NCBI RefSeq assembly: GCF_000143415.4
Contig: NW_003314365.1
Coordinates: 509,181-573,180 of the forward strand
Reading direction: 5' to 3'
Length of the DNA stretch: 64,000 nt
Source of the DNA: Selaginella moellendorffii
Lineage: Eukaryota; Plantae; Lycopodiophyta
This document shows positions 1 to 38,704 of this stretch, piece after piece (the first letter of the stretch is position 1; the number at the start of each line of letters is the position of its first letter). Position numbers and translations under genes: made by a program. The notes under the pieces are model-generated. The model was given only the letters and a program-made list of their open reading frames with translations, did no database searches and was not told the DNA's origin.

Positions 1-1411
1 GTCAGGTCTCTCCATGGAGAGAATCCTGTTATGATAATATGCAGTCCTGCAACTTCTCTGCTCGATGTTGTGGTCGAGCCGCCTTCTAACCAACGTCTCT
101 CGTTCTTGAGTGCTACAAGAATTCTTCGACAAAGCCATTTTGATAGCAGTGCACTCGTCACACTTTGAAAAGCTGGAGTACTTTCCTATACTCACATCCC
201 TGAACCTGTTGCTCCACAATCTACTAAATCTAGATTGGCTCAGCTTCCTCTAGCCATTACTCTGGAGTTCCCGATTCACATCTTCCAATATGGCCCCCTT
301 GGTATACATGGAAGGGAGAACTCGTTGGGTGTCTCGTGTTCCATCTTCCAAGAGGCGGGTTTTATGTGGTTGCTGCTCGCTACATGTCTCGACAAACCTC
401 TTGAAGATTGCCTCTCCATATACAACATGACCCCTGGTTTTGTGCGTACCGTCGTTCCCATGGACTGCCTGTTGAACCCTTTGTTCCTCGAACTCAGTTT
501 TGATTCTGTAGAATGTGCTTCGAGGGACTCCATAAATGATTCTCCATGCCTTCATGCAGACCAAACCCCTCTGGAAGACCATGTCCCCCCACCTGATGTT
601 CTGAAGCATCAACAAATGACCGTAATGCCTCATACACAAAATTACGAGCTGCCTTCCAGGACAATGTCTTGTATCTTGCTCTCTCCTCTTCAATAGCATC
701 CCAATCAGCATGTTGACAGCACCTCCTCTTGCAACAAGCAACTGTCGAGACCATTCGGACCTCCATCGCCATTTTTTGCCTTTTCGGTTCCTTGCTCAGA
801 TCCCTTTGGCTGCGCTTTAGGAAGGTGTACTTTCTTTTCCCATGAAGAGATGTTCTGTCATCAGTTGTAGTGGTGTTTGATTGTGAATCCTTCACATTCT
901 CAAACACTAAATGCCTCAATTTCCACCGCACAATGCTTCCAATAGTCAGACTGTTTTCTTCTGTGTCAACAACCTCTAAAATTGCAACTCCAATATCATC
1001 CCAGCCCAATTCTTGATTAGCAACCGCATCTCTTGGATCGACAACTGTGGCTAAGCCCTCAGCTACCACCTCCCCCTCGGGGTTGTTTAGAAACACCTTT
1101 GCCTGAATCCATGTAGCACGGTTCTTAAGATCCACGGAGGGAACATGCGTCGCACTTGCGCTGTCCCCAACATCTGCTTTCTTCTGCAGATTTTTCAAGG
1201 CAACAACAACATTTACCCCGACGACCATCTCTCCTCGTTCAATAGCGACCACATTCCCATCGAAGACAGTCTCTACTGATACAGCAGCATTGCCTTCCCC
1301 AAGCCTTTGACAGTGTATAACAAAGTTCCGATCCATAGACACAAGGGTCCCTTTTGCAACTCTCTTCCCACCATTCAAAATGTAAACCTTTTCCCCAACC
1401 CTGAAGGCCAT
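1..1411 (-). pseudogene. Transposase-like gene, N-terminal part: two Tnp1/En-Spm-like domains, then a Cys/His-rich region resembling DUF7869-type transposon proteins; disrupted
   Basis: ATG at 1411 directly after a TTTCAG acceptor. Repeats VAKGTLVSMD..IH...LG...VSV and VAEGLATVVDP..V....LG...VAI...VRW. Then CCKRRC, a frameshift near 600 into VCMKAWRIIYGVPRSTFY, and an in-frame TAG at 250-252. The frame then stays open to base 1: FSRLWSNRFRDVSIGKYSSFSKCDEC...LDHNIEQRSCRTAYY. The catalytic region would lie left of the window. Confidence 0.65.
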
Positions 1412-1590
1412 TCTGAAAGTGCAGAAAAGAAGTTAAGACCATACAAAAAATGATTGGAGAATGGCCTAAATCATAACATACCAAATAGCATGAGGCCACA
1501 TGCCATTATTCAAACATGCTATTGACACCCACGTGAAATTTCGCATTCACAAAATTGGCATGAGCCCTCATGCCATTAGTGGTACCACTA

Positions 1591-1782
1591 ATGGCATGAG
1601 GCCTCACGCTATCTTTGGCCCCTGCTAGCCTGTTGCTATATTCCTTTTGCCTTGTTGCAACTGTATATATTTTTGTGTGCGTGACTAGTCACCCATACAA
1701 AAATATATACAGTTGCAGCAAGGCAAAAGGAATATGGCAATAGGCTAGTAGGGGCCAAAGATGGCATGAGGCCTCATGCCAT
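1591..1782. repeat. 192-bp near-perfect loopless inverted repeat (fold-back) bounded by two palindrome copies
   Basis: Centred on GTGACT|AGTCAC (1681-1692). The 96-bp arms differ at 8 positions by my count. A smaller palindrome centred on GGTACC (1581-1586) overlaps its left end. Confidence 0.95.
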
Positions 1783-1974
1783 CTTGATATACACACAGCT
1801 GCAGGCAAGTAAAAACATACATGACAATACGCTAGCCATGAAATTGCAAGGGCCCAAGATGGCATGTGGCCTCATGCCATTTCTAAATGTGGTCCTAAAC
1901 CATTCCATGGTGAACATACCAGGAAGCACAAGTGCCGAATATCAAGAGGAAGCGGTAGCCACACCAAAGACAGT

Positions 1975-2044
1975 GCCGCTCGCAACACCGCAACTACTCG
2001 TAGCGCCGCTCGCAACACTGCAACTGCTCGTAGCGCCGCTCGCA
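1975..2044. repeat. 30-bp CpG-rich tandem repeat (about 2.3 units) in the probable 5' UTR exon of the transposase-like gene
   Basis: GCCGCTCGCAACACYGCAACTRCTCGTAGC repeated. A minus-strand donor-like GTATGT lies near 1919. Confidence 0.75.
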
Positions 2045-2398
2045 CAAACTGCCACTCGCATAAACTGCCGCTTGCAATGGCGCTCGCAATGCCGCAACCG
2101 CTTGTAGACGCATAAACCACAGCTCACAACGCCGCTTACACAAGCAACGCTCACTGCGCTCAGCAGAACCAAGAACACGGCACACAAAAATGATAGACCT
2201 AGGAATGAGTTCGAGAATTCAAAAATAACACACGCTTGAACGTCACATCAAATCCTCTGACAAACCAGATCTTATGATTCCTCTGACAAATTTCAAACTG
2301 AGTAGCTTCTAGACTTTGCTGTCGGAGGTTGAACTTTGTCACATCATGTCCTTGCCTCGATCCAGCTGTGCCATGTCAGTGATTCGAACTTTGCCATG

Positions 2399-2416
2399 CC
2401 ATGTCAGCGATCCGCG
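2399..2416 (+). promoter_or_regulatory. Plant histone-promoter type-I-like element (hexamer + octamer)
   Basis: CCATGTCAGCGATCCGCG versus consensus CCACGTCANCGATCCGCG (one mismatch), in the divergent intergenic region. Confidence 0.4.
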
Positions 2417-2870
2417 CCAAGATTATTCGCCGTGTAAAGGAATAATTATGCTGTGTGTGTACGTCCATTTATGGCAATATAAGGCCACATGCCATTCAAA
2501 GAATAATGCTAGTCGAGCATCTTTTGGTGCATTTTTGGGTTCAAAATTGCATGAGCCCACACGCTATAAAGTTTACCTGTACCAAAAATAGATAAACATT
2601 TTTAAACTTACAAACACATGCCCTACTTACATTCCTTTGGTTGCTTAAAATTCAAAAATATTATAAACCTTTCTTTTTGCATTTTCAATGTTTTCAATTA
2701 TGGTTTTTGATTTTCGCAGGACCAGCCTAGTAATCTATTTGCATCCCGTCATGTTTATAGCTAGCTTTCGTTTGTCCCCTTCGCTAGCCTGAGATACCTC
2801 TGCTCGGCATCTGCCGCTTACAGCATTTGCCCAGAAAGGGCATCTTTCTTCACGCAGCATTTGCCACATG

Positions 2871-2902
2871 TTTAGGGTTAGGGTTTAGGGTTTAGGGTTT
2901 AG
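2871..2902 (+). repeat. Short interstitial plant telomeric repeat / telo-box cluster
   Basis: TTTAGGG TTAGGG TTTAGGG TTTAGGG TTTAG. Confidence 0.85.
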
Positions 2903-4137
2903 CAATTCAGTAGCTTGATAAACATGCAAATACAGAACTTGATGCAAAATCCTTTGATATGTCACAATGCCCCTAGGACCATAAACACATTTCAATAGAG
3001 AGGGTCCTTTCATTTCATAACTCCTTACGTAGATCTTGGTGAAACCAGAGTTAGTGAAGTTGGTTTCTTGTGATCCCGCATCTGATTGTGATGTCCCTTT
3101 GCAGTGTCGATGGAAAGGTCAATGCACACCAAACTATAGAATCTTGGAGCAAAATAACGGTCGGATCTATGGCAAATGCCCCTGAAACATTGTAAGGCTC
3201 GTGTGGTCTCATGTGGTGTCCGATCGAGATGCTTCTTTGCAGGGTCATCAAGAAGGACATTGTATACCATTCTATAAAATCTAGTTGCGATCTAACGGTT
3301 GGATCTCCAGAAAACTCAAAACAATCTCGCGCGTGTCAGAATATTCTAGGAATATACTCCTATGTGCTCCTGAAAATGGCATGCGGCCCCACACCATTCA
3401 AGAGATAACGCCAGATGACGCCGAGCATTTTTTGGTGCATTTTTTGGGATCAAAATTGCATGAGCCCACATGCTTGAACGTCATCCTCTGACAATTTATT
3501 TAGCTGAACATCTGGCATTTTTGGAAATACAAGATGCTTTGGAATATCCAATCATGCATGGTATAAATATAGCGAGGGTATTAAATGATATCCCAATCAT
3601 GATCTTTCTTTTGGATTTCGCGTGCATGCAGTCCGAGGAATGATGACGTTGCGGATTTCTTTTGGATTTCACGCATGCGCGCGCCGATCCAGAAATTAAT
3701 GGTGGCACCCAAGTCTGAGAAATGATGACGTGGCGGGATTACCAACCGTCGTGACATTTCGCGCGTGTGAGGTTAGGTTTTGCATTTTGCTTCGTACTCG
3801 CGCTCGCACACTCGCGCTCGCATCGCGCTCCCACTCGCGCTCCCACTTCTCTACAGGTTTCTCGTGTGCATCGGCATCCACTCGCGCTTGCATCACACTC
3901 GCGCTCGCATCGCACTCGTGTGCATCGGCGTCCACTTCAAGACACACCCAGTTTGTAACTTCGCCGCCAACTCCGCCGCCCACTCCGCCACCCACACGCA
4001 GCCCACTTGGCGTCCCGGGAGATTTCAGCGCCACTCTCCAACTGTAAGTGGCAGAGTAGCCTTGCTGCTACGATCCGCTGCACACACAGTGCACATTCGC
4101 CAGCGAGTCCGGTTGTCACGCCTCCATTCGGCTTCAA

Positions 4138-7100
4138 ATGGTAAGTCTTTTAGGCCAAGTAGAAAATGGCATGAGGCCACATGCCATTCAGTAGCAACAT
4201 TGGCATGCACCGATTGGGCTCTCGAGTGCAGTCCGGTTACAGATGGCGTGTAGCCTCACGCCATCTTAGGATGCAACCTCAAGACATCTGATGCAGTGGT
4301 GAATGGCGTGTGGCCTCACGTTATTTCCAGCTACTAGCTTTTCATCTATCAGCTCTAATTGTTGTGCATTTCTGAACAGGCGAGGAATTGCGTTCTTCTT
4401 CCAGCCACTGTCAATGTGGATGCAGAGAAGGGGGAGGAGCTCACCAGTTGGACTTTCGGGATGGAAGGCGAGGATCTGAGGCTGTACAACACAGATGGTG
4501 GGAGAAAAGAATGCATGGGGATCCTCATCCAAGTGACAGACACTCCATGCAGTTCCATGCAAGAATATGGACTGGCACTTGTGGTAGAGACAGCGTCTGC
4601 CTTCAAGATCCACCTTGCACATCCTAGCGGCTTCCCGGAGGGGGGTAGCAGCTATGAGGAATTCCTAGAGGGAGCTAGGGAGAGGTTGTCCAGGAGGCCC
4701 ACAATTTCAAAGACGCTGCGGGTCTATGAAGATCACATGGAATCCACGGACCTCACCTACGGCGATGTTCAAAAACTATATTCCAACATTGAGCCGTTGA
4801 GAGTGACTCCAGTTCGCGAAGCAAAGGGGAAGGGGGTCGATCTGGAAACTACCTCGAAGCAGAAAAGGGTGGTCAAGCTCAAGCCGATGTCCGACTCTCC
4901 TGCTCCAAAAAAGAAGCTACTCAGTGATGCCATTGCCTCGGGTTCGAACACTACACCCACCAAAAAGAAGAGCCGCAAAGAGCAGAAAGAGCAAGAAGAG
5001 GCAGCAAAAATCGTCGCAGATAATAGTACTTGTTACTATTCCAACAAAGTATATACAATCGACGTGAGCCGTATCGACATCCAAAGCAAATACAACCACA
5101 GGCTAGTATCTGATGAGTGGGTGGAGAAATTGAAGCAGAAGATGCTGGCAAGTCCAGTAACACCCGACATCGCAAACGTGATCCCCTACTACCAAAAAAT
5201 GAAGGGCGAGATGAGGTTTCCAGACTTGATCAATAGGAAGGTGTTGGACGATCAGAACATCCGGTTCTATGCCGTCTCCGGGCAGCATTCTAGCTTGGTG
5301 ATGCAAGAGATAGTTGTGGATATTATGGTGGGCGAGGAGGTGAAGAAAGTCTTCAAGACAAGAGTTGTCCGCCTGATAAAAGGCAACTCGCCCCTCCGAT
5401 CTATCATATACATCTCCCACGCGCAGAATGTCAAGCAAGAAACGTGCTACAAATCGGGTCTGCACGAGACATTGGCACGAACACGGAAGCTCTGGGTTCA
5501 ACTAAAGAAGCCACAAAAACCAGGACAAGGACGTGCACTAGCAACTAGCGCCTGGCAGGTAAGCCTCGTTGTATGTGGCATAGCATGTGGCCTCACGCCA
5601 TTTCCATTGCAGGAATTCTCGAGTCTTCTCTCGAAAACACTGGGGGTCAATGACACACTCAGCATCCATAACATTCTACTCGCGACAAAAGTTGTTTTTG
5701 ACAAATGGGTAGATGTGCTGAGGAGGTACCATGACGGGGAGTTGCCAAACTCAATGGGTGTGGAGGACGGCCGGAAGCCCAATGATTTGAAGCTCAACGC
5801 CTTGCGTTTCTCGCGGTCTCTAGACGACGACGACCTTCTGACAGTGGCTAATGCTCTTCTACGTGGTGAGGTTGTCTTCAACAAGACCAAAATGACTCCC
5901 GGCCATATTGTGACATACGAGGACTTGTGCACGACTCTGAGAGCTCGTGTGCTATTGAAGGATTGGATCTTCGAGCAAGTGGCCGTGGAGAGGGTGAGCA
6001 TCAACACCACGCAAGAGATGATGGAAGCGCTGGAGTTGTCAAATGAAGACATCGACGAGTACGTGAAGGGGGCCCCCAAGTTCATCGATCTGCTGCGGGA
6101 TGCCACGAAAAGTAAAGCTGAGAAGTTGGATCAATATCCAAATTTCATTAAGATTGATGTCGACCGCCGGCTTCAGAAACAGCTCGACCCCGCAGCAAAG
6201 GCCTATCGAGAACCTTACCGGGTATACTTGAATTCGGATGAGGATCAAAGGTGGAGGAGCATCGTTTCCCGCGGAGATGAGCAGGTCAAGAACATCTTTT
6301 GTGTGATGGACTTCACAAATGAGGAAATCACTCATGCAGACGAAGTCAGCTCCATCATTGACTTAATGGTGGGACTTGCGGAGGTGGAATCTTCAGTCCA
6401 CTATATGATCTACGACTCCGAATCCTATCACAAGTTCTGGAAGGCCTTGAACGAGGTGAAGGCTCGGTTGAAAGGCAAGGAGATGCGGGAGATCCATGGG
6501 ATAATGGCTAAGAAGAAGATACCGACGAATGTCTGCATCTTCACACTCGCCCTTGTTATTGGTCCTGCAGCAGAGTGGGACTGGAGTGACTTCCCAGCTT
6601 CGTTCGACAAGGCCAATCGAATTGATCTGAGGGAGGTCAATTTACCCGTGCCTGAGGAACTGAAGACGGCTATGGAGCTTTCGAATCCAAAGAAAGCTCC
6701 AGGTGCAGCATGGGAAATGCTCAGCTGGGTCTTCAACGCAATAACGGGTGGGTCACCTGCTTCCGACTCCAAGGGCAAATGCGTTGTCGAGTACAACTGC
6801 GGCGAACTATTCTTTCGAGCCGCACTACTCAAGGGTGTCCCGTGTGTTGCGGTGACAAACTCCATTGAAGAGGTGACTTCAATGGAGCATATAATTACAG
6901 TTGCCAAAGAAAAACAGTATCTTCTCTGCGAACCTGGTGAGTACGCACTTTAAGTTTAAATGTTATCTCACAAGCTCTGTATGCAGGAGCGTGGCCACCC
7001 CCAGATGCTGAAACGACGTTAACAGCTACTGTTGAAGATACCCATGTTGGGCCGAGCTCACAACCTGCACAAGGTAAGGTCACGTGTGGCCTCACGCCAT

Positions 7101-9754
7101 TTTGATTATAGATCGTTGTGAATATTCAGACACGAGGACTGAAAAGCGCACTGGTGGCGCATCGAAGAAGGACAAACAGAAAAGCAATAGGAAAAAAGGA
7201 GGTACAAATTATATTTGCAATGGCGTGTGGTCTCATGCCATTCCTTGCAGGAGAAACTTCTTCAAAGGCAAAACAGGCAAGCACCAGCCAAGCTCAAACT
7301 GACAGTGGTCATAAAAAGCGAAAGCACGTTGGACAGTCGTCGAGATCAGAGGCGTTTGATTCGAAAAGGAAGAAGGGCAACGAAAAGATGATAGGTAATG
7401 CCTCGCGGTTATGGCGTGTGTGCTCATGCCATTCATTGCAGATCAAGGGCTGAGTGAAAGAAGGCAGTCACCACCTCATGACTCAGATTCCTATGGCGGA
7501 CTCCCCTTCCCCAATCTCAATGGAGAGGTACAATGGATGAGGGAAGCTTTTCAAGGCAGGGCCACGTTTTTCTCATCTCGTCGTCTTCGAAGGGTGCAAG
7601 AACGTGCAGAAACCATGTTAAGACAGTCGGGTGAGGATACGGTCCTAGGTCACACACTAAAACAGGCTATGGATGTCTTGTATTTTGAGATGGAGACTCG
7701 GCCAGATGATTTTCCCAAGATGGTCCTGGAAGAACAAGCCATCCAGCCTGAGCAGCCTATGGAAGAAATGCAGGAGGGGGATGAGGAGCCAGAGAAAGAT
7801 AATGAGCAGGAAGAGCAGAAGGACGAAGAGGAGGACAAAGAAGAGGAGGACGAAGAAGAGGAGGACGAAGAGGACTTGGATGGTCCTCACAATGGTGACG
7901 ATCACAATAACGACGACGACAATGATGACGACGATGGCCAGCCTGAGGTGGCCAAAGAGCGGTGGAGGAAGGTCATACAAGACAAACCATCAGGTAAATA
8001 CATCCATTCCTAACCTCTTACCATTTCTAACATTGTCCATGTAGGTCGCAGAGCAAATGGTAAGTAGAGATTATTCAGTTGAATTTACAAACTCTAGCCT
8101 TTAGTGTCGAGGAAGGATAGTGCCAAGCAAGGGTCGAAACGTATGTCCAATCCTTCAGAATCAGCAGTGCGCCCAAGTGATATCGGTCCTAGTTCCTCAA
8201 TAGCAGTTGATGGTAAATACAGTATAGTCGATTCAATGTGCTAATGAGTTTGTTTTTAGTAGCACGGGAGGATACCATCTCAATCGAAGGGAGATATTTG
8301 GACATGCATATGGATCCGCCAGTGGACTCTACTTGCCTGCAAGAGTCATCAGAGCTGGTGGAGGCTACTATCCATATCAACGCCAAGCAAGCTGACCACG
8401 CTCCACTTGATGCTGCCCATACCACTGAGTCAATCTTGTCCACGTATCCAACTGACGGTGACCAGGCACCATTGGACCCACATGAGGCCGCCCCAGCCGC
8501 CGAGCCGGTCGTATCCTCATTTCCAACGGACTCAACGTGTGCCCAATCGTCTGACTACGCGCCGTTGGAACCTCCCTACACCGCCCCTGCTGCCTGTTCG
8601 GTCATGTCCACTTTGCCAACGGAGGCACCAGCTGAAATGGCGTGTGATCACACGCCATCGGAACCACCCCATGCCACTGTTGAGCCAGTTGTACCAGAGT
8701 CTACAGCTGAAATGGCATGTGCCCACACGCCATCGGATGCGATTGACCCCACATTGCAGAGGAGAGTATTTTCGCCCTTCACGTTTCCTTGACCAAAACC
8801 CTCTCAACGACCATCGGGAGCAACATTCGCTAATATTGTAGATGGTAAAATTGACTTGTACCATTTTTTATGCTGACGCATTTCATTTCAGAGTCACGGC
8901 GAACGTACTGTATCGTTTTTTATCTGAACGGTGTCCTTTTCTCCCATGAGCGTGGCTCGTCCTCGAATGTCATTGCACCCTCCAAAGCCTGCGGTCGCAA
9001 GTTGGTCAAAAGAGACAGATTCACATTAATCACATGGGAGAAACTGCGGGATCTAATAATGACCATGCGACACTTAAAACAGAGGGCCGGGTTCAATTTG
9101 CAATTGGGAGTTTGGACATCCATGATGCGCCACAATGCATTAACGTTGCTACAAATGATGCACGATCAGACGCGAGTAATATTACCATTTGACTTTCTCC
9201 TAATGCAGGAGGATTGCTTGACTATGGTCCATGTGAGGGGTAGCAAGCCCATCTTCGTCAAACCAGAGGCTGTAGTGATGAACCGGACTGCTAGCTCAAG
9301 TGAAATCCTCATCATCGATGACTCGCCGATTAAAACTACAGCGAACACGCACACATATGCAGTGCACCCCATCTCTTGCAGTATGGAAACTAGGGAGAAG
9401 AAACCGTATGTTCTGGGGGACCTTGCAAAACGGCTTGGAGCGATGGTGATAGAGAACCGGCCAGTCCAGGAGGTGGCTGCAGAAATCAACCAAATGGCAG
9501 ATGGAACGGTATATCAGAAGCCATTTGATCGGACAGACACCAGTCATCATTTATGGCATGTATATTGTCTAGCCAAGCACTATCCGCATCTCCATAATCT
9601 GCTCAACCGGATGGGTTCTTCGACCACTGAACATGAGCGTGGACGTATTAGAGAAGAGATGGCATTACTATTGGGTTTAAATCCTGATAGTGTGGAGAGT
9701 GATGAAATTCCAAGATTATTGTATAGGCGTTGGAGGCAAAAAATAACAGTCTGA
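4138..9754 (+). CDS. 11-exon cargo gene (about 1640 codons): ParB/Srx-like domain, degenerate beta-class N4/N6 DNA-methyltransferase-like fold, basic/acidic linker, C-terminal FCP1/NIF HAD-phosphatase-like domain; one in-frame TGA at 8790-8792
   Basis: Exons 4138-4140, 4380-5558, 5613-6936, 6987-7073, 7130-7201, 7251-7394, 7442-7993, 8045-8059, 8105-8212, 8260-8844, 8892-9754 join in frame through GT-AG introns and link six separate track ORFs. Motifs: YNHRLVSDEWVEKLKQKM...FYAVSGQHS (ParB-like); KCVVEYNCGELFFRAALLKGVPCVAV (MTase motif I-like); IVFYLNGVL, LGVWTSM, KPIFVK, ILIIDDSPIK (FCP1-like). Confidence 0.75.
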
Positions 9755-9901
9755 GATGGCATGTATTTATTTAAAAATGTAACTTATTATGGCATGGGGT
9801 TCCATGCCATTGTATTAATATTAAAAGACAATTCTTTGAGAGGATTTGCATTATACTAGAAGTGTTACAGCATGTTATTGGAAGTCTACGAAGTTGTTTT
9901 A

Positions 9902-10065
9902 TTAATAATGGGAAAGTAAAGATTGAATGGGGACTTGGGCTCCACCTAGACTCGGAGCAACTGAGCCAATATTAAAAGGATGGAAAGAAATTGGACGACG
10001 ATGACAAGGAGAAGAGAGAGGTGAAGCAGTGGCAGGGGGAGGAGAAGTGATTGAGTAGACATTTC
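9902..10065 (-). CDS. Probable last exon of a third, convergent gene of the element, truncated upstream by an LTR insertion
   Basis: Open frame GNVYSITSPPP...SLLSHY* preceded on the minus strand by TTTTATTTTAAACAAG. A palindrome copy (10081) sits just upstream of this acceptor, as in the cargo-gene introns. Confidence 0.35.
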
Positions 10066-10130
10066 CTTGTTTAAAATAAAATGGCATGTGCCTCAATGCA
10101 GTTGAATTTTGTTATATTTATATACTATAT

Positions 10131-10491
10131 AAAGGTTTGGAAACCTTATTTTACAAGTGGGATAATGACAATTCCCACTTTAACGAAATAGAGCTTAGAT
10201 GGAGTAGTGGAATCGAGATAGAGACAGTGTCTTTAACAGATTTAGTGAGAACTAAAAAAAGAAAAAGTGAGAACCACCACAAGTGGTCCAATTAGTCTTT
10301 AAGTTGGAGAGACTATCCTCCTTAGAGATGGGCAAGGCAAGGTGAGCCTTTGGTATCAAACCATTGACGAATATTGGCGAGGTGCCAAGAATGAAAAGAG
10401 TAATACAAGTTGGTGTTACTTTATAAAATAGTTTATCGTTCGATGAGGACATCGAACTTTGTCTATGGGTGGTGGAGTTGTGAGACACAAA
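10131..10491 (+). mobile_element. Fragment of long-LTR retrotransposon family A: 3' internal region, PPT and first 13 bp of LTR
   Basis: Homologous to the reverse complement of about 58970-59300. PPT GGGTGGTGGAGT is followed by TGTGAGACACAAA at 10479. Confidence 0.75.
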
Positions 10492-11700
10492 TGTAAGGAA
10501 CCAACTCCCTGAGGTGTCGTAGGCTAAAGGATCCCCGAAAGCATGACCGAAATGACAAAGAGTTCATCAGATGGGACTGAGTCTGAGATCGAGTCCAAGA
10601 CCGACTCTAAGATCGAGTTCGAGATGGAGTCCGGAGTCGAGTCCAAGGCTGACTTGGAGACCGAGTTCGAGACCGAGTCCGAAATCAAGTCCAAAGTCAA
10701 GTCCTAGATCGGGTCCGACATTGAGTCCGAAATCGAGTCCGAGACCAAATCCGAAGTCGGGTCTGAGATCGAATCCAAGATCGAGTTCGAGACTGAGTCC
10801 AAGTACTAATACAGGTCAAGGGGTGAAAGCCCAAAGTGTGCGCGTCTCCCAAAGGGGGGGGGGGGGGGGGGCTGCAGGGGGTTCCAAAAGTATAGTAGGG
10901 ATAGTGAGGTTCAGAAACCAGTCTTGAAGGAACTCTCCAGTGGTGCTTCCAAACTGACTTGAGGTTGAGACTGGGGCCGAGGCGTCTTGGGTGGGAGTGA
11001 GCATGGACTCGGGTGGTGCCGGAGGGGCCACCCACGGAAGTGCTCAAGAGCAGCTCCCACTTCCGAAGGGGAAACCGACTGCGGTGCTCTCGGCTCATGT
11101 GGAGTGGTGCCCCACTTGAGTACCTTGTGGCTCATTAGTCCTCGCCCTTCCTAGGGGCTTGGGCCTTCCCTTCAAGATGGAAGTGGGAGGGTAGAGGTAC
11201 CCATACCGGGCTGTTATGTCACGGTGTTTTGCCCTGGCGTCCCGAAGCAAGTATTGCACCCAAGACTTGGGATTTAGAGGGTCCCATGATCAAGTCTTGT
11301 GGTATCAAGGGATGTTAGGAACCTGGAGGCTTGGTGTGCTTGGCTGCTTATGCTTGTGGGGAGTGTAGCTGAACCTTAAGTCCAGTCTAACCCGGGGACA
11401 AGGATTGGGAAAGATTTGGGAATCTGTGGATGGATGGCTAATGCTCCGTTGCTCGTGTAATGAGTAGCTGAAACCAAGTAGGACCAAGTAGGAGCTGGTA
11501 CCATAGGCGGGGACCTTGGTGAGGGAACATAGCAAAAGCCAAAGTAGTGTGGGATGGATAGACGAGGTAAGTTGGCAAATTGGAAAGGAAAAATTTGTGG
11601 CTTACACCCAAATATCCCAAGACCCTTAACCAATTAAAAAAAAGGGTGCACTTTTGTTCATGGGACCTTTCCCTCTATATTTGAACCCCTATAGATCGTC
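10492..11700 (+). mobile_element. LTR family B copy nested in the family A LTR
   Basis: Starts TGTAAGGAAC, nearly identical to 63718 onward. Contains a GAGTCC/GAGACC hexamer array. PBS-like TGGTATCAAG near 11300. Right boundary approximate. Confidence 0.65.
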
Positions 11701-23158: not shown

Positions 23159-24902
23159 TACACTTGATATTCCTGAGACCGTCAATCAGATCACCATTGA
23201 AGATTTTCGTCCTTATGCGATGGAGATACTCCATCCTACTGCGTATTTGTCGTATGTAAACACGAAGCTCACTTTTGTCCAGTCCATTCTCAGCAGATAT
23301 CATATTCAGTGATAGATGGAACGCATGGAAGTTTTTTTTCCAAAGGGTGATGAACTAGACACGGAAAAGAAAGCGTGAAAGCAATATATATACCACAAAT
23401 CTCTCAAAACGGGAACTAAGGATATAGTCCTTCACCTGACAATCTCTCGGCTTAAATCTGAGTTTCGAAGGGAGGAACACAAGCAACAAGGCTTTATATG
23501 CCGACATAATCATATTCTCATCGTCGTGCTCTTTTTACAGTATCACCATCCTCCAGCTGGAAGAATTAAACTTATGAAAGAAAGAAAAGAAAACAGACCA
23601 AGTACCTTGATGATGGATTTTTTTTATCTCGTTGCTTTAAAGAGAGAGCACAATATTTTTAAAATGCCTCTTCCATTTCCCGAGTCTAGGTGGGATGACA
23701 AGTCCAAAACTGCAAGTTGAAATCTTTGGAACACGACAAGTTAACAAGTTCTGAAAGTTAAGAATGATGCTTGTCGTTCTCTACTACATCGACAAGCATT
23801 CCTCCAAGTACGGTGACAAGAAGATCCAACCTCATCCCTTTTTGTGACTCGCAAGGATAATTTGACTTCCTTTATCCACCGATGCCAGCTAGAACTTCAG
23901 GAGTTCTAGCAAAATGCCAGTTCTCCCATGCTCTGTCGCCCCCGATAGATGCAAGAAAGAAAAGAGAGTGAGTCAGCCGATGAAAGAGAAGGAGAGGTCA
24001 CAAGTAATCTCTTCTGTAGATGATAGAGTAGCTTCTTGAAGAGCGTGACTTTCGATCAAGGTCTGATATGGAGACTGGTGCGTCGATCCAGGTTCCAAGT
24101 GCCTTAAAAAGCATTCCAGTGACATGAAGAGGAAGGATGGGTGAGCTGGCAAGGAACCTGCCATGTACACCCTGGATTGGGAGAAATCCCATTGCTTCTG
24201 CTGCACCGCCACTGTGAAACAAAAAGAGGAGCACGGCAAAGAAGTCTCGGCCCAACAAGCAAGAGAGCAGCCTAGTAATCCCATCTCGATCCGTAAGCAC
24301 TCCTTGAGCTCCAGCAGCCGGAGCAATTGCTTGAGGCCAAGATGAAGGAGAGGTGGAAAGAATGCGTGGAATGCTTCATGCACACGTGGCTTACCCCATA
24401 TGTTACATACCTTTTGATCCCTGTAGCAATCAAAATGCGACTTTCATATGTTTATAAACATTGTAACTGTCGTCCTCGCTGAAGGCTCGTTCCCATTCAC
24501 TGCCTATTGATCCTTTCTCTTTTGTTGTCTCCTGATGCGCTCCATGTTTGAAATCTTCAATCTCTACATATCACAAGGAGCGCTGATGCACAAGAGCAGT
24601 ACCACATTAATATAAAGAGTACAACTTATAGCTACAATAAATTCTCATAAATACCAGCTAAAATTTACACATTACATTGGCTCATTCCACACTCTTTTTC
24701 TATTTCCTCACTCAATAACAAACTAAAAATAAACTCAACACTAACAAGGATGCAAGAAAAAAATGATGCATAAATGTTAAAAGATTTCTGAAAAAGGATA
24801 TCTTTTCTGATAAAAAAACAGTTGGTTTTCAACTGAACCCATGGACCAAATGAGAGAAAGTGGTTTTGCTCTAAACGTGACGTGGGTTTGGTCTCGCTGC
24901 AT

Positions 24903-26381
24903 ATGGATGACCAAGGGGAAGCGCAGAGGTCAGAAACGTTTCTGCGTTCAAATCTCGACAGCAGTTGTGCAACACCGAGGCATCAATGGAGGTCACCAGA
25001 CTGGAATCCTCTCAACAAACAGCCGCACACACCGTTCGCCTCACTTAATTCCCATTCTTTAACGACAAAAGACATCGCCGTTGACAGCAGCAATTCTACA
25101 GCTTCCTCATCCGATATTCTATGCCCTCCAATGGGATCCTTTGCCGTCAGTAATCTAGACGAAACACAAGGTCAGTCAATTGATCCGTGGAAGAAAAAGC
25201 TTCCAATGAAGCTTGATTTGGCAGCTCTCAGCAGAAAAGTAGATGATCATCTATCTGAGGACAAGATGCCTAACCCTGACATATCCGAATCCGACAATGA
25301 CCTCCACCTTCGGCGCCAAAAGATGGCTATGTGCGATCGCCAGTGTACACGAGTTATGGGCCATCTCTATTTTGGCAGCAAAAAAGTGGCGGAAAACTAT
25401 GCAATGCTAAGGCGTTTTCGAATCACACATATTCTCAATTGCGTTGGAATGGTTTGCCCCAGCTATTTTCCAAATGATTTCTCTTACAAGACACTCTGGC
25501 TTCAAGATTCACCTTCAGAAGATCTTATTTGCGTGCTCTATGACGTATTTGATTTTATTGAGGATGTCCGAGAGCAAGCAGGAGGCAGGGTCTTTGTACA
25601 CTGCTGCCAAGGGGTGTCCCGTTCGGCATCGTTAATAATTGCTTACGTTATGTGGCGAGAACGACGCAGCTTTGACCACGTATATGACGATGTCAAGCAG
25701 CGCCGAAGCGTGACATGCCCCAACATTGGTTTTGTCTTTCAGCTCACTCAGTGGCAGAAACGTGTGCTAGATGCCAATAGAGCAGCAGTCTCATGCAATA
25801 CGGTGGCTATAATGTACCGCATGACACCGCATTCGCATTTTTGCCCATTGCAGCTTGTTCCGAAAGCTGTGCACGGTCCGCCTACTTCGGATTTACTTGA
25901 CTCAAGAGGGGTGTTCGTTCTCCAGCTTCCCAACCGTCTTTATGTCTGGCGTGGCCGTGGCTCAGACAAAGCAATGGCAGCAGCTGCTGAACGTGCCGCA
26001 TTCCAGCTTGTGCGGTATGAGCATGCTCAAGGACCCATTGTGGTGGCTGTAGAAGGAAGGGAGCCACCATTCCTGCTCAATGCACTAAGACGTGAGCATT
26101 TACTGTCCGGTCCAGATATAAATTCCCAGGCCCAAAGGGGCGCATTTGCTGAACATATCAATTATGCGGGCAAGGCACCGTTTGGTCTAAAGCTAGTCCG
26201 TGCATATGATGCAGACTTTGAGCTGTATAGACAAGGGCTTGCAGCAAACGGTGGGGCCGTGTCTGTGGACTTTAATGCAGGATTGCAACCTCACCCCATT
26301 AGCAACTTTCCAGCGTCACCTCGAGTTGGAAGATGGAGGGTCATGCGCCCACAAATCAATCATATTGCAACAAGATGGTAG
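24903..26381 (+). CDS. MKP1: MKP1-like dual-specificity MAP kinase phosphatase with a gelsolin-like domain, single exon, 492 aa
   Basis: Catalytic VHCCQGVSRS, WLQDSPSED and CPNIGF, followed by YRMTPHS..PLQLVPK and LDSRGVFV...LYVWRG, typical of plant MKP1. First ATG at 24903. Confidence 0.88.
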   Translation: MDDQGEAQRSETFLRSNLDSSCATPRHQWRSPDWNPLNKQPHTPFASLNSHSLTTKDIAVDSSNSTASSSDILCPPMGSFAVSNLDETQGQSIDPWKKKLPMKLDLAALSRKVDDHLSEDKMPNPDISESDNDLHLRRQKMAMCDRQCTRVMGHLYFGSKKVAENYAMLRRFRITHILNCVGMVCPSYFPNDFSYKTLWLQDSPSEDLICVLYDVFDFIEDVREQAGGRVFVHCCQGVSRSASLIIAYVMWRERRSFDHVYDDVKQRRSVTCPNIGFVFQLTQWQKRVLDANRAAVSCNTVAIMYRMTPHSHFCPLQLVPKAVHGPPTSDLLDSRGVFVLQLPNRLYVWRGRGSDKAMAAAAERAAFQLVRYEHAQGPIVVAVEGREPPFLLNALRREHLLSGPDINSQAQRGAFAEHINYAGKAPFGLKLVRAYDADFELYRQGLAANGGAVSVDFNAGLQPHPISNFPASPRVGRWRVMRPQINHIATRW

Positions 26382-37486: not shown

Positions 37487-38704
37487 ATGGGAAGGAAGAA
37501 CAAAGACAACAAGAATCCAGGCCCTGGTGCATACTATCCTGACGTCAAGCCAGTCACTCCAGCATCTCCAGCGTATTCGATCTCCTGCAAGCCTCCTCCT
37601 CCCCACAATGACGAAGGTAATCCCGGACCAGGAGCATACACTGTCGAGCATGGAAATAAGCGTTTTGGACCTGCATTTACAATTCCTGGTCGCCATCCTT
37701 CTTCTCATGAGAAAGACGAAAAAGCACTTATGCCTGGACCTGGAGCATACAGAGCCGACTGTGAGATCATTCATCCTCGAGATCCTGCTTACTCAATGCA
37801 GGGACGAAGGTCTTCCTACCCAAAAGAAGTTCTACCTGGACCGGGTGCTTACGGTGCTGGAGCTTCAGAAAGCGGTCCGTCTTTTACAATTCTGGCGAAA
37901 AGAGAGTCGCCAATGTCTACAAGTGCCGAAACGCCTGGACCGGGCGCCTATAATGCTGGAGAGCGTCCAAAATCGTCGGCTATTTCTTTTGCTGGCAAAT
38001 ATGGACGAAGGTTGGAGGATGACAGTCCTGGACCGGGAGCTTATCCAGCAGCAAGTACTTTAACAGGTCCGTCCTTCAGCATGGCACGAAAGCGACCACC
38101 ACGAGAGGTTATTGAGACGCCTGGACCTGGACAGTATGCAGCAGACGCAGCCCTGGCTTATCTTCAACACAAAGAGCCTGCTTTCAGCATTGCTGGTCGA
38201 GGACGAAGACAGGTTGAAATTTCTGGACCCGGGCCTGGTGCCTACAGTCCCAGGGTCGTGACTTCTGAAACCAGACGAGGATGCAGTATTTCTGGAAGGA
38301 AGCCTGCTAGAAAGATGGAAGTCAGTCCCGGTCCTGGAGCTTACTTTTGGAAGACTGTCAAGAGGCCAGGTACTCCTGCGTATACCATTGCAGGGCGACA
38401 CAGTAAATCGCTTCAGGAAACTGGACCTGGGCCAGGTGCTTACAGTCCAGTAGAAAGCTACTGGGGTGGTCCGGCTTACAGCTTCACATCCAGAAAGCTC
38501 AACAGGCCAATGAGAGAGTCACCAGGACCAGGAGAGTACAAGGCCAGCACCAAGAAACTAGCCGAATCATCACCCGCTTTCTCCATTGGCATCAAGTATT
38601 CTTCCAAGAATTTTGAATCTGGTCCAGGACCTGGAACATACAACTCGAAATCTTCCCTTGGAGGACCGGCTTTCACACTCTCTGGAAGAGGTGATGATGA
38701 TTAG
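37487..38704 (+). CDS. ODF3/SHIPPO-1-like PGP-repeat axonemal protein, 405 aa
   Basis: Twelve or so PGPG(A/Q/E/T)Y repeats, each followed by a P(A/S)(F/Y)(S/T)(I/M/F)-type segment. Intact single ORF. Additional upstream exons cannot be excluded. Confidence 0.88.
   Translation: MGRKNKDNKNPGPGAYYPDVKPVTPASPAYSISCKPPPPHNDEGNPGPGAYTVEHGNKRFGPAFTIPGRHPSSHEKDEKALMPGPGAYRADCEIIHPRDPAYSMQGRRSSYPKEVLPGPGAYGAGASESGPSFTILAKRESPMSTSAETPGPGAYNAGERPKSSAISFAGKYGRRLEDDSPGPGAYPAASTLTGPSFSMARKRPPREVIETPGPGQYAADAALAYLQHKEPAFSIAGRGRRQVEISGPGPGAYSPRVVTSETRRGCSISGRKPARKMEVSPGPGAYFWKTVKRPGTPAYTIAGRHSKSLQETGPGPGAYSPVESYWGGPAYSFTSRKLNRPMRESPGPGEYKASTKKLAESSPAFSIGIKYSSKNFESGPGPGTYNSKSSLGGPAFTLSGRGDDD

Follow-up and report, generated by a model that had tools for sequence, protein, structure and literature searches.

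The window analyzed here is a 64,000-nt stretch of a eukaryotic scaffold (Selaginella moellendorffii, contig NW_003314365.1), with N gaps, that opens with two divergently transcribed genes: a minus-strand gene cut by the start of the window, and a plus-strand gene whose spliced model encodes a ParB-like and DNA methylase-like protein. Along these genes runs an array of a 22-bp palindrome, ATGGCRTGWGGCCTCAYGCCAT, which on balance we take to be the cognate site of the plus-strand protein. All 64 kb were scanned with the pattern ATGGCRTGWGGCCTCAYGCCAT at up to three mismatches, with 100 shuffles for comparison, and then at up to six mismatches. The stricter scan returned 16 distinct sites, confined to 1485-8733, where the shuffles averaged 0.02 and never exceeded 2, and the more permissive scan returned 20, all between 1485 and 10102, with 0 in the remaining 54 kb. 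A preliminary description of this DNA had reported about 20 copies in the same interval and none in the other 54 kb, and both statements were reproduced. Its placement of the copies was also right, namely at the 5' end of the minus-strand gene, in the divergent intergenic region, in five introns, in an open reading frame (ORF) at 8238-8792 whose coding status is uncertain, and downstream.

Within the gene span of the plus-strand gene, all seven palindromes are intronic, in introns that make up 12% of that span (P about 4e-7), and five of the six introns hold palindromes. The model joins exons 4138-4140, 4380-5558, 5613-6936, 6987-7073, 7112-7201, 7251-7394 and 7442-7993; the gene probably runs on further 3', so that its 1126 codons are a minimum. 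The six introns are all GT-AG (239, 54, 50, 38, 49 and 47 nt), and retention shifts the frame for every intron except 5559-5612. Four palindrome-holding introns measure 38-54 nt, and in the three very short ones at the 3' end of the model the palindrome fills about half of each, with modest RNA hairpins (z -1.3 to -2.5). Segment 5559-5612 is in frame yet missing from homologous proteins, and its position is that of an intron at three homologous loci (L003, from Riccia, L006 and L008). This indicates an old intron that gained the motif later, rather than the insertion of an introner. For the tiny introns as a group, an origin from introners or miniature inverted-repeat transposable elements was considered and rejected: the palindrome and a few acceptor-proximal bases are common to them, the 5' parts are unrelated, and one position is ancestral. 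There were no near-identical copies of whole introns and, in the window, no copies outside the motif-bearing unit.

The remaining copies lie to either side of the gene. Copy 1485 lies a short distance 5' of the minus-strand start codon (ATG 1411), behind a CTTTCAG that resembles a splice acceptor, and copies 1555-3455 occupy the divergent intergenic region. There, a 192-bp inverted repeat (1591-1782, 92% complementary) has palindrome copies as both of its outer ends, two copies stand on either side of a second perfect palindrome, TAGTGGTACCACTA (1555-1612), and two of the four degenerate copies are inside a 53-bp direct repeat (2514-2565 / 3422-3474, 92%). Downstream of the modeled exons, copies 8637 and 8712 fall within a 75-bp repeat, where both read AEMAC(D/A)HTPS in a Pro/Thr-rich ORF. 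The window consensus reaches one base further at both sides (A...T), and its R/Y positions correspond to CpG versus CpA/TpG. The ancestral arm, ATGGCGTGWGG or equivalently CCWCACGCCAT, thus carried CpG, and the variation looks like methyl-CpG decay, not compensation. Coordinates are collected in Table 1.

Table 1. Positions, within the window, of the two genes, their domains and introns, and the palindrome copies.
Feature	Position	Strand	Remarks
Divergent upstream gene	1..1411	-	cut by window start; exon-like ORFs 494-1411 (ATG 1411) and 250-741
Palindrome starts, first ten of 20	1485, 1555, 1591, 1761, 1859, 2474, 2546, 3376, 3455, 4166		
Palindrome starts, last ten of 20	4243, 4303, 5580, 7079, 7220, 7411, 8637, 8712, 9789, 10081		
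Five strong copies (1485, 1555, 1591, 1761, 1859)	1485..1880	.	minus-strand gene 5' end and bidirectional promoter
Four degenerate copies (2474, 2546, 3376, 3455)	2474..3476	.	intergenic region
ParB-like/methylase-like gene	4138..7993	+	spliced model, 1126 codons, no stop
First intron	4141..4379	+	three palindromes (4166, 4243, 4303)
ParB/Noc-like region	5037..6110	+	AlphaFold model (pLDDT 78.5), Foldseek
Phase-0 intron, 54 nt	5559..5612	+	family-conserved position; palindrome 5580
Beta-class N6A/N4C DNA-methylase-like domain	6207..6915	+	Foldseek; low pLDDT here
Three very short introns	7074-7111 (38 nt), 7202-7250 (49 nt), 7395-7441 (47 nt)	+	palindromes 7079, 7220, 7411
Copies 8637 and 8712	8637..8733	+	inside ORF 8238-8792, putative coding status
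Degenerate downstream copies 9789 and 10081	9789..10102	.	beyond last ORF

Several other features were noted close to the two genes. A plant-type telomere repeat, (TTTAGGG)4, lies in the intergenic region at 2873-2900. Low-complexity sequence that is C-rich and strand-skewed, with CGCTCGCA-like units, occurs on both sides of that region (1975-2150 and 3790-3920), and a similar CGC-rich stretch is found just 5' of the gene (about 2200-2300) at a homologous locus, L007. Downstream, a 294-amino-acid (aa) ORF at 8870-9754 gave a weak match to NIF/FCP1-like phosphatases (E 0.003, below the cut-off), with YLNGV at the position of the DxDxT motif; as it was not found in the homologous loci, it may represent either a captured piece of sequence or one more exon.

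Palindromes at homologous loci

An exhaustive HMMER search returned 14 weak relatives of the plus-strand product, and homologues were limited to Selaginella, the liverworts Calypogeia and Riccia, and other public assemblies; a pattern-based protein scan for further relatives gave 204 pattern matches, 0 of which were confirmed. DNA was fetched around the homologues, and the loci were labeled L002-L010, with L002 from Calypogeia and L003 from Riccia. Among these loci, every family with a ParB-like N-domain and sufficient flanking DNA has a palindrome of its own. The preliminary description had proposed looking for such private palindromes as a check, and they were present in four homologous families, each with a different palindrome of 21-26 bp in 7-16 copies, against 0 in shuffled sequence: AAACCTCACGC-N4-GCGTGAGGTTT in Riccia (13 copies), TTGCCTCGAGAT-S-ATCTCGAGGCAA in Calypogeia (7 copies, or about 13 by half-site), GTCRCAACGC-S-GCGTTGYGAC at L004 (16 copies) and AACCTCGAYA-N3-TRTCGAGGTT at L007 (16 copies). 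The resulting matrix of motifs by loci is strictly diagonal, with 0 cross-occurrence among the five loci.

What is conserved is the placement of the palindromes, not their sequence: they cluster just upstream of the ParB-like gene or in its first intron. The first intron at L007 holds four copies, arranged as in the first intron of the window, and the family-conserved intron (5559-5612 in the window) holds the local palindrome in the window, L002 (3 copies), L004, L007, L009 and L010. The last two of these come from other samples and are 84% (L009) and 96% (L010) identical to L004, and they keep the L004 motif in the same places. At a greater distance, the proteins of L007 and Calypogeia share about 50% identity, and CCTCGA occurs in the half-sites of both. 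A Selaginella relative that is without the ParB N-domain, and lies among host genes, is also without the motif.

We also asked how the two arms of each palindrome vary, counting complementary arm positions and comparing them with those obtained when right arms were shuffled among sites. In the window, 156 complementary positions were observed versus 153.6 +/- 3.4 after shuffling (p=0.28), and the outcome was alike in the four homologous loci, so that the arms vary independently in five of five. Such behavior is expected of two half-sites that are read separately and speaks against selection on intrastrand pairing. Selection for a hairpin or cruciform was accordingly rejected, the intron RNA folds being unremarkable as well. 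The independence of the arms also removes an argument of the preliminary description, which held that dyad symmetry is maintained by compensation in copies of different sequence. Its examples are correct, copies 1761 and 8637 being perfect 22-bp palindromes and copy 9789 having 9-bp arms; the maintenance by compensation fails the arm-shuffle test.

A few further similarities and differences among the loci may be recorded. The liverwort-type motifs (L002, L003 and L007) have CCTC at one common arm position. An 8-mer, CCTCACGC, is common to the window and Riccia motifs but is oriented oppositely with respect to the dyad, pointing outward in the window and inward in Riccia; the sharing may reflect homology or chance. 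Spacing is irregular in the window versus regular tandem arrays in homologues, found at L004 2141-2525 (26 bp), L007 1020-1440 (about 40 bp) and L002 10497-10591 and 13589-13680 (35 bp). Finally, two Logan contigs, L008 (1649-2062) and L005 (1-414), overlap at 100% and join to 6955 bp, giving a full-length homologue with the motif VDGQHT.

Domains of the encoded protein

An 864-aa ORF of the plus-strand gene gave no usable match in Pfam, NCBIfam, PDB sequences, PHROGs or a word-based search, and one family member matches a ParB-like PHROG at a marginal E of 0.015. AlphaFold models were compared with PDB structures by Foldseek. The best 40 PDB matches of the region 5037-6110 all belong to the ParB superfamily, among them Noc 7nfu (E 1e-3, template modeling (TM) score 0.51, about 300 columns), ParB 7bnr, 6t1f and 6sdk, KorB 8qa9, PadC and sulfiredoxin. 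The region consists of an N-terminal domain of ParB/sulfiredoxin (Srx) fold (about 5037-5520), followed by a helical domain of the helix-turn-helix (HTH) type (about 5610-6105). Chains of Noc, ParB and KorB align over 270-300 columns across both domains with a target-normalized TM of 0.5, and the sulfiredoxin match has a root-mean-square deviation of about 4 A over about 112 columns. The ParB/Srx-like domain of the preliminary description is thus borne out by fold and is not detectable by sequence.

The second region resembles beta-class DNA methylases. Its Foldseek matches include CcrM 6pbd, M.PvuII 1boo, M.RsrI, M1.HpyAVI and the rotifer N4CMT 8s9o (E about 1e-3), and the model, which is of low confidence by predicted local distance difference test (pLDDT), shows a Rossmann-type fold whose motifs run in the permuted order IV ... 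X-I. Sequence resembling motif X/I can be read (KAP...VVEYNCGELF). The catalytic (D/S/N)PP(Y/F/W/H) of motif IV, on the other hand, is replaced by MDFTNEE, and it is missing in every family member examined (MDFTN, ADLRR, CDSAN, LDATT and ADFAR), with the Asp alone kept; in the window copy the S-adenosylmethionine (SAM) loop has degenerated as well. In the Pfam search the window protein gave no match to PF01555, while a Calypogeia exon matched it weakly (E 0.0016, 18.9 bits versus a cut-off of 26.7).

When whole structures were compared, phage ParB/Srx-methylase fusions aligned over both domains, across 560-690 columns and with a best E of 1.9e-6. Going by these models, the window protein would combine a DNA-binding ParB-type module with a methylase module that is probably inactive, and the phage ParB-methylase fusions are its probable evolutionary source. 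Bryophytes and lycophytes would then still carry a ParB-methylase fusion of phage type whose active site has degenerated.

Candidate binders and competing explanations

Two proteins encoded at the locus could recognize the palindromes. The minus-strand gene encodes two beta-rich repeats resembling those of TNP1, a cluster of Cys residues (CCKRRCC) and an HTH of psq-like type (YGVPRSTFYR), with a weak match to PF03017 TNP1/En-Spm (E 0.0064, below the cut-off) and to HTH_psq (E 0.077). A word search found no homologues of it; its sole recognizable counterpart is the divergent gene at L007, with which it shares 35% identity across 54 aa at the N-terminus (E 2e-6), and no trace of it was seen at the motif-bearing loci L002, L003 and L004. 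The only gene common to all motif-bearing loci is the ParB-methylase-like gene, which makes it a better candidate binder than the minus-strand 'transposase'.

We therefore favor, with some confidence though well short of certainty, the proposal that the palindromes are cognate sites of the plus-strand ParB-methylase-like protein, paired privately in each lineage. Binding, the geometry of a dimer and a regulatory or anti-silencing outcome are what we infer under this proposal. The protein would be a eukaryotic descendant of a phage or bacterial ParB-methylase fusion, and as a dimer it would contact each 11-bp arm through one helix-turn-helix of ParB type. Since site density peaks in the bidirectional promoter and in the first intron of either gene, binding would first of all regulate transcription of the element itself, comparable to KorB/OB on plasmid RK2. 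As sites are also kept wherever coding capacity permits, in tiny introns and in the 3' region, the protein could in addition mark the whole unit. The methylase module, having lost its catalytic motif, would more probably serve to bind DNA or recruit a partner than act as an enzyme. Finally, each lineage would have evolved its own protein/site pair, in effect a private address.

Several observations weigh against this proposal. An exact scan of metagenomes for the palindrome gave 0 matches, and its confinement to the unit is that seen within the 64-kb window. The relationship to ParB is one of fold, with modest scores (E 1e-3, TM about 0.5), and a search of the window protein against Pfam ParBc and PDB ParB sequences gave no match at E<=10. 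A conserved [IV]SGQHS at 5277-5291 stands where the box II motif GERR (GERRxRA) of ParB, which binds cytidine triphosphate (CTP), is expected; in the models it appears to be the structural equivalent of GERR, at the strand-helix junction. Two homologues of full length, each on a short contig (L006, and L008 joined to L005), show no palindrome family, the conserved intron of Riccia holds no palindrome, and both the window and L007 encode a second DNA-binding candidate in the divergent gene with its psq-like HTH.

The replacement of GERR by SGQHS bears in particular on the analogy, drawn in the preliminary description, with ParB loading at parS: the behavior of a parS-type CTP clamp cannot be assumed here. 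It is doubtful, in our estimate, that the palindromes are parS-like loading sites for a nucleotide-switch clamp on chromatin, one that would spread or bridge from about 20 sites while the dead methylase grips DNA or a partner, and that would shield the element from silencing or direct silencing, with protein and site co-evolving in each lineage. If true, this would be the first ParB/parS-type system on land-plant nuclear DNA.

Other explanations give the palindromes a different reader, or none. They might be the sites of the minus-strand protein, as a TNP1/TNPA-like or transposase-like psq-HTH protein serving transposition as in En/Spm. The weak similarity of that gene to TNP1/En-Spm and HTH_psq, the presence of the same kind of gene in divergent orientation beside the palindrome array of L007, and the density of copies at its 5' end all point this way. 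We nevertheless consider it unlikely, because the gene was not found at the motif-bearing loci L002, L003 and L004, the motif extends over 8.6 kb, including internal introns, and is not gathered at the ends, its Pfam matches are below threshold, and no DDE domain, terminal inverted repeat (TIR) or target-site duplication (TSD) was identified. More unlikely still is that the palindromes are recognition or modification sites of the methylase, by which the element would methylate itself (N6A or N4C) and which the ParB part would merely help to target. The C-terminal domain does have a beta-class DNA methylase fold and a motif X/I-like sequence, self-modification is what the authors of the Ectocarpus study propose for their ParB-methylase protein (PMC12477816), and several motifs have cores that look like restriction sites (GGCC in the window, CTCGAG at L002 and TCGA at L007). 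Against this stand the loss of (D/S/N)PP(Y/F/W/H) in all family members examined, the degenerate SAM loop of the window copy and the low confidence of the methylase part of the AlphaFold model.

We give the least credence, and very little, to the palindromes being structure-prone short repeats (hairpins or cruciforms, a source of small RNA, or a miniature mobile palindrome or introner) that slippage, gene conversion or insertion had multiplied locally. Such an origin would suit the fixed-period tandem arrays of the homologues (26 bp at L004, about 40 bp at L007 and 35 bp at L002), the location of the 192-bp hairpin in the promoter and the large share of four tiny introns that is palindrome. 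However, compensatory co-variation of the arms was seen in none of the five loci, the intron RNA hairpins are ordinary, and a search of the window against Rfam matched no known RNA family. The unrelated 5' parts of the palindrome-bearing introns, together with a position at 5559-5612 that is older than the motif, speak against introner insertions. Moreover, local spread by itself would not account for lineage-specific palindromes at the same positions of the same gene, kept in a copy that is 84% identical.

The preliminary description had called the motif-bearing unit transposon-like, and its status as a transposon is tentative: alongside the sub-threshold TNP1/En-Spm similarity, no DDE domain, TIR or TSD was found, the region 1-1411 has no transposase-core match in Pfam, and a TIR search of the Riccia locus returned the palindromes themselves and nothing else. 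The left end lies outside the window and the right end was not recognized, its limit being probably before 10202, where an unrelated repeat starts. In favor of mobility are the patchy, TE-rich genomic context (TE, transposable element), the existence of several divergent L004-family copies (sequence clusters of 3 and 10; three samples), for which family alone multi-copy status is suggested, and the algal precedents of Ectocarpus Sola1 and red-algal Plavaka.

The repeat that begins directly after the last palindrome (10202-10492) is 80% identical, in inverted orientation, to 59262-58968, near a gypsy-type retroelement at 50.6-56.6 kb with gag, protease, reverse transcriptase, RNase H and integrase ORFs. 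Elsewhere in the window are two genes of ordinary host type. One (24882-26381) encodes an MKP1-like dual-specificity phosphatase that includes a gelsolin repeat; the other (37487-38704) encodes a SHIPPO/ODF3-type flagellar protein, which suggests a plant whose sperm are motile. These genes, the (TTTAGGG)4 run and the gypsy retroelement give the window a plant-like character.

Relation to known systems

To our knowledge, mobile elements that recognize their own DNA are rare in eukaryotes, with VANDAL/VANC as the sole proven case. Like VANC, the protein described here is element-encoded and is proposed to recognize short motifs, different from family to family, that have accumulated in the element's own non-coding regions. 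Unlike it, it belongs to an unrelated protein family, and whereas the VANC motifs are short and non-palindromic and their function has been experimentally shown, function is predicted here. The 12-bp motifs of En/Spm TNPA offer a second parallel, as repeated short motifs in direct and inverted pairs, and the window adds a weak TNP1-type neighbor; TNPA motifs are subterminal, however, whereas the present ones span the unit and persist at loci that are without a TNP1-like gene.

Among bacterial systems, KorB binds OB, of which 12 palindromes are spread over plasmid RK2. The window protein shares with KorB/OB, ParB/parS and Noc/NBS the fold of N-domain plus HTH, and the sites share a distribution of palindromes scattered over the encoding replicon and at its own promoters. 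It differs in that SGQHS stands in place of GERR, neither a ParA partner nor a dimerization domain at the C-terminus was seen, arm length is greater (10-13 bp) and the setting is nuclear chromatin with introns. The best whole-length structural matches are the phage ParB/Srx-methylase fusions, with both domains aligned; these are 400-500 aa long and presumably active, whereas the plant protein is extended by long additional stretches at both termini and its active site has degenerated.

The closest parallels are eukaryotic. ParB-HTH/Dam fusions have been described in chlorophytes and chytrids (Iyer et al., PMC4738411). In Ectocarpus, the transposon Sola1-1_Ec32 carries a divergent accessory gene for a 1104-aa protein with ParB-like and N4C/N6A DNA methylase parts, and its authors proposed a group of accessory proteins whose role is to bind the element that encodes them and to modify it (PMC12477816). 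In the red alga Bostrychia, the PAG3 gene of Plavaka elements, which belong to the En/Spm superfamily, encodes a ParB-like module joined to a 2-oxoglutarate-dependent oxygenase, with tandem inverted repeats adjacent to it and self-binding proposed (bioRxiv 10.1101/2025.02.11.637652). A paper on Marchantia DN4MT1 and N4-methylcytosine in sperm covers prokaryote-like N4C methylases and mentions no ParB domain, and in the literature we found no land-plant case described.

Compared by description, the window protein is like that of Ectocarpus Sola1 in its two-domain architecture, size (at least 1126 versus 1104 aa), divergent transcription, prokaryotic-type domains and proposed self-binding. The Ectocarpus gene, in contrast, sits in a brown alga within a defined 21.5-kb Sola1 transposon with a transposase and has no cognate repeat reported, whereas the present gene is from a land plant, neither a DDE transposase nor termini were identified, and the catalytic motif of the methylase is lost. 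With PAG3 the likeness lies in the ParB-like module, in inverted-repeat arrays beside the gene and in detection at the level of fold or HHpred, and the placement of its element in the En/Spm (CACTA) superfamily echoes the weak TNP1/En-Spm signal found here. PAG3 has an oxygenase as its partner, with the methylase (PF01555) in a separate gene, PAG2. Its tandem arrays lie next to the gene, while the palindromes here extend into introns and the 3' region as well, and co-variation between lineages was not reported there.

Like the algal ParB-fusion accessory genes, then, the gene described here joins a ParB-like domain to the domain of a DNA-modifying enzyme and has inverted-repeat arrays beside it. 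The interpretation given in the preliminary description is borne out in part and passed the refuting check that it had set itself. Its remark that it knew of no such module is out of date, since the Ectocarpus Sola1 and red-algal Plavaka cases appeared in 2025; the present module joins that kind as a member from land plants. The algal proposals of 2025 came without a defined site or a comparative test. New here are defined sites, their co-variation with the gene over five lineages, a conserved placement that includes very short introns, and degenerate nucleotide-binding and catalytic motifs; the retention of binding-site-like palindromes within introns of 38-54 nt is an unusual case in itself. 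Self-recognition of this kind bears on how transposons escape from silencing or steer it. Because the five lineages supply defined candidate sites of 21-26 bp in a land-plant setting, together with the clean prediction that each protein favors its own palindrome, the hypothesis that these algal-type fusions read sites in their own DNA becomes directly testable.

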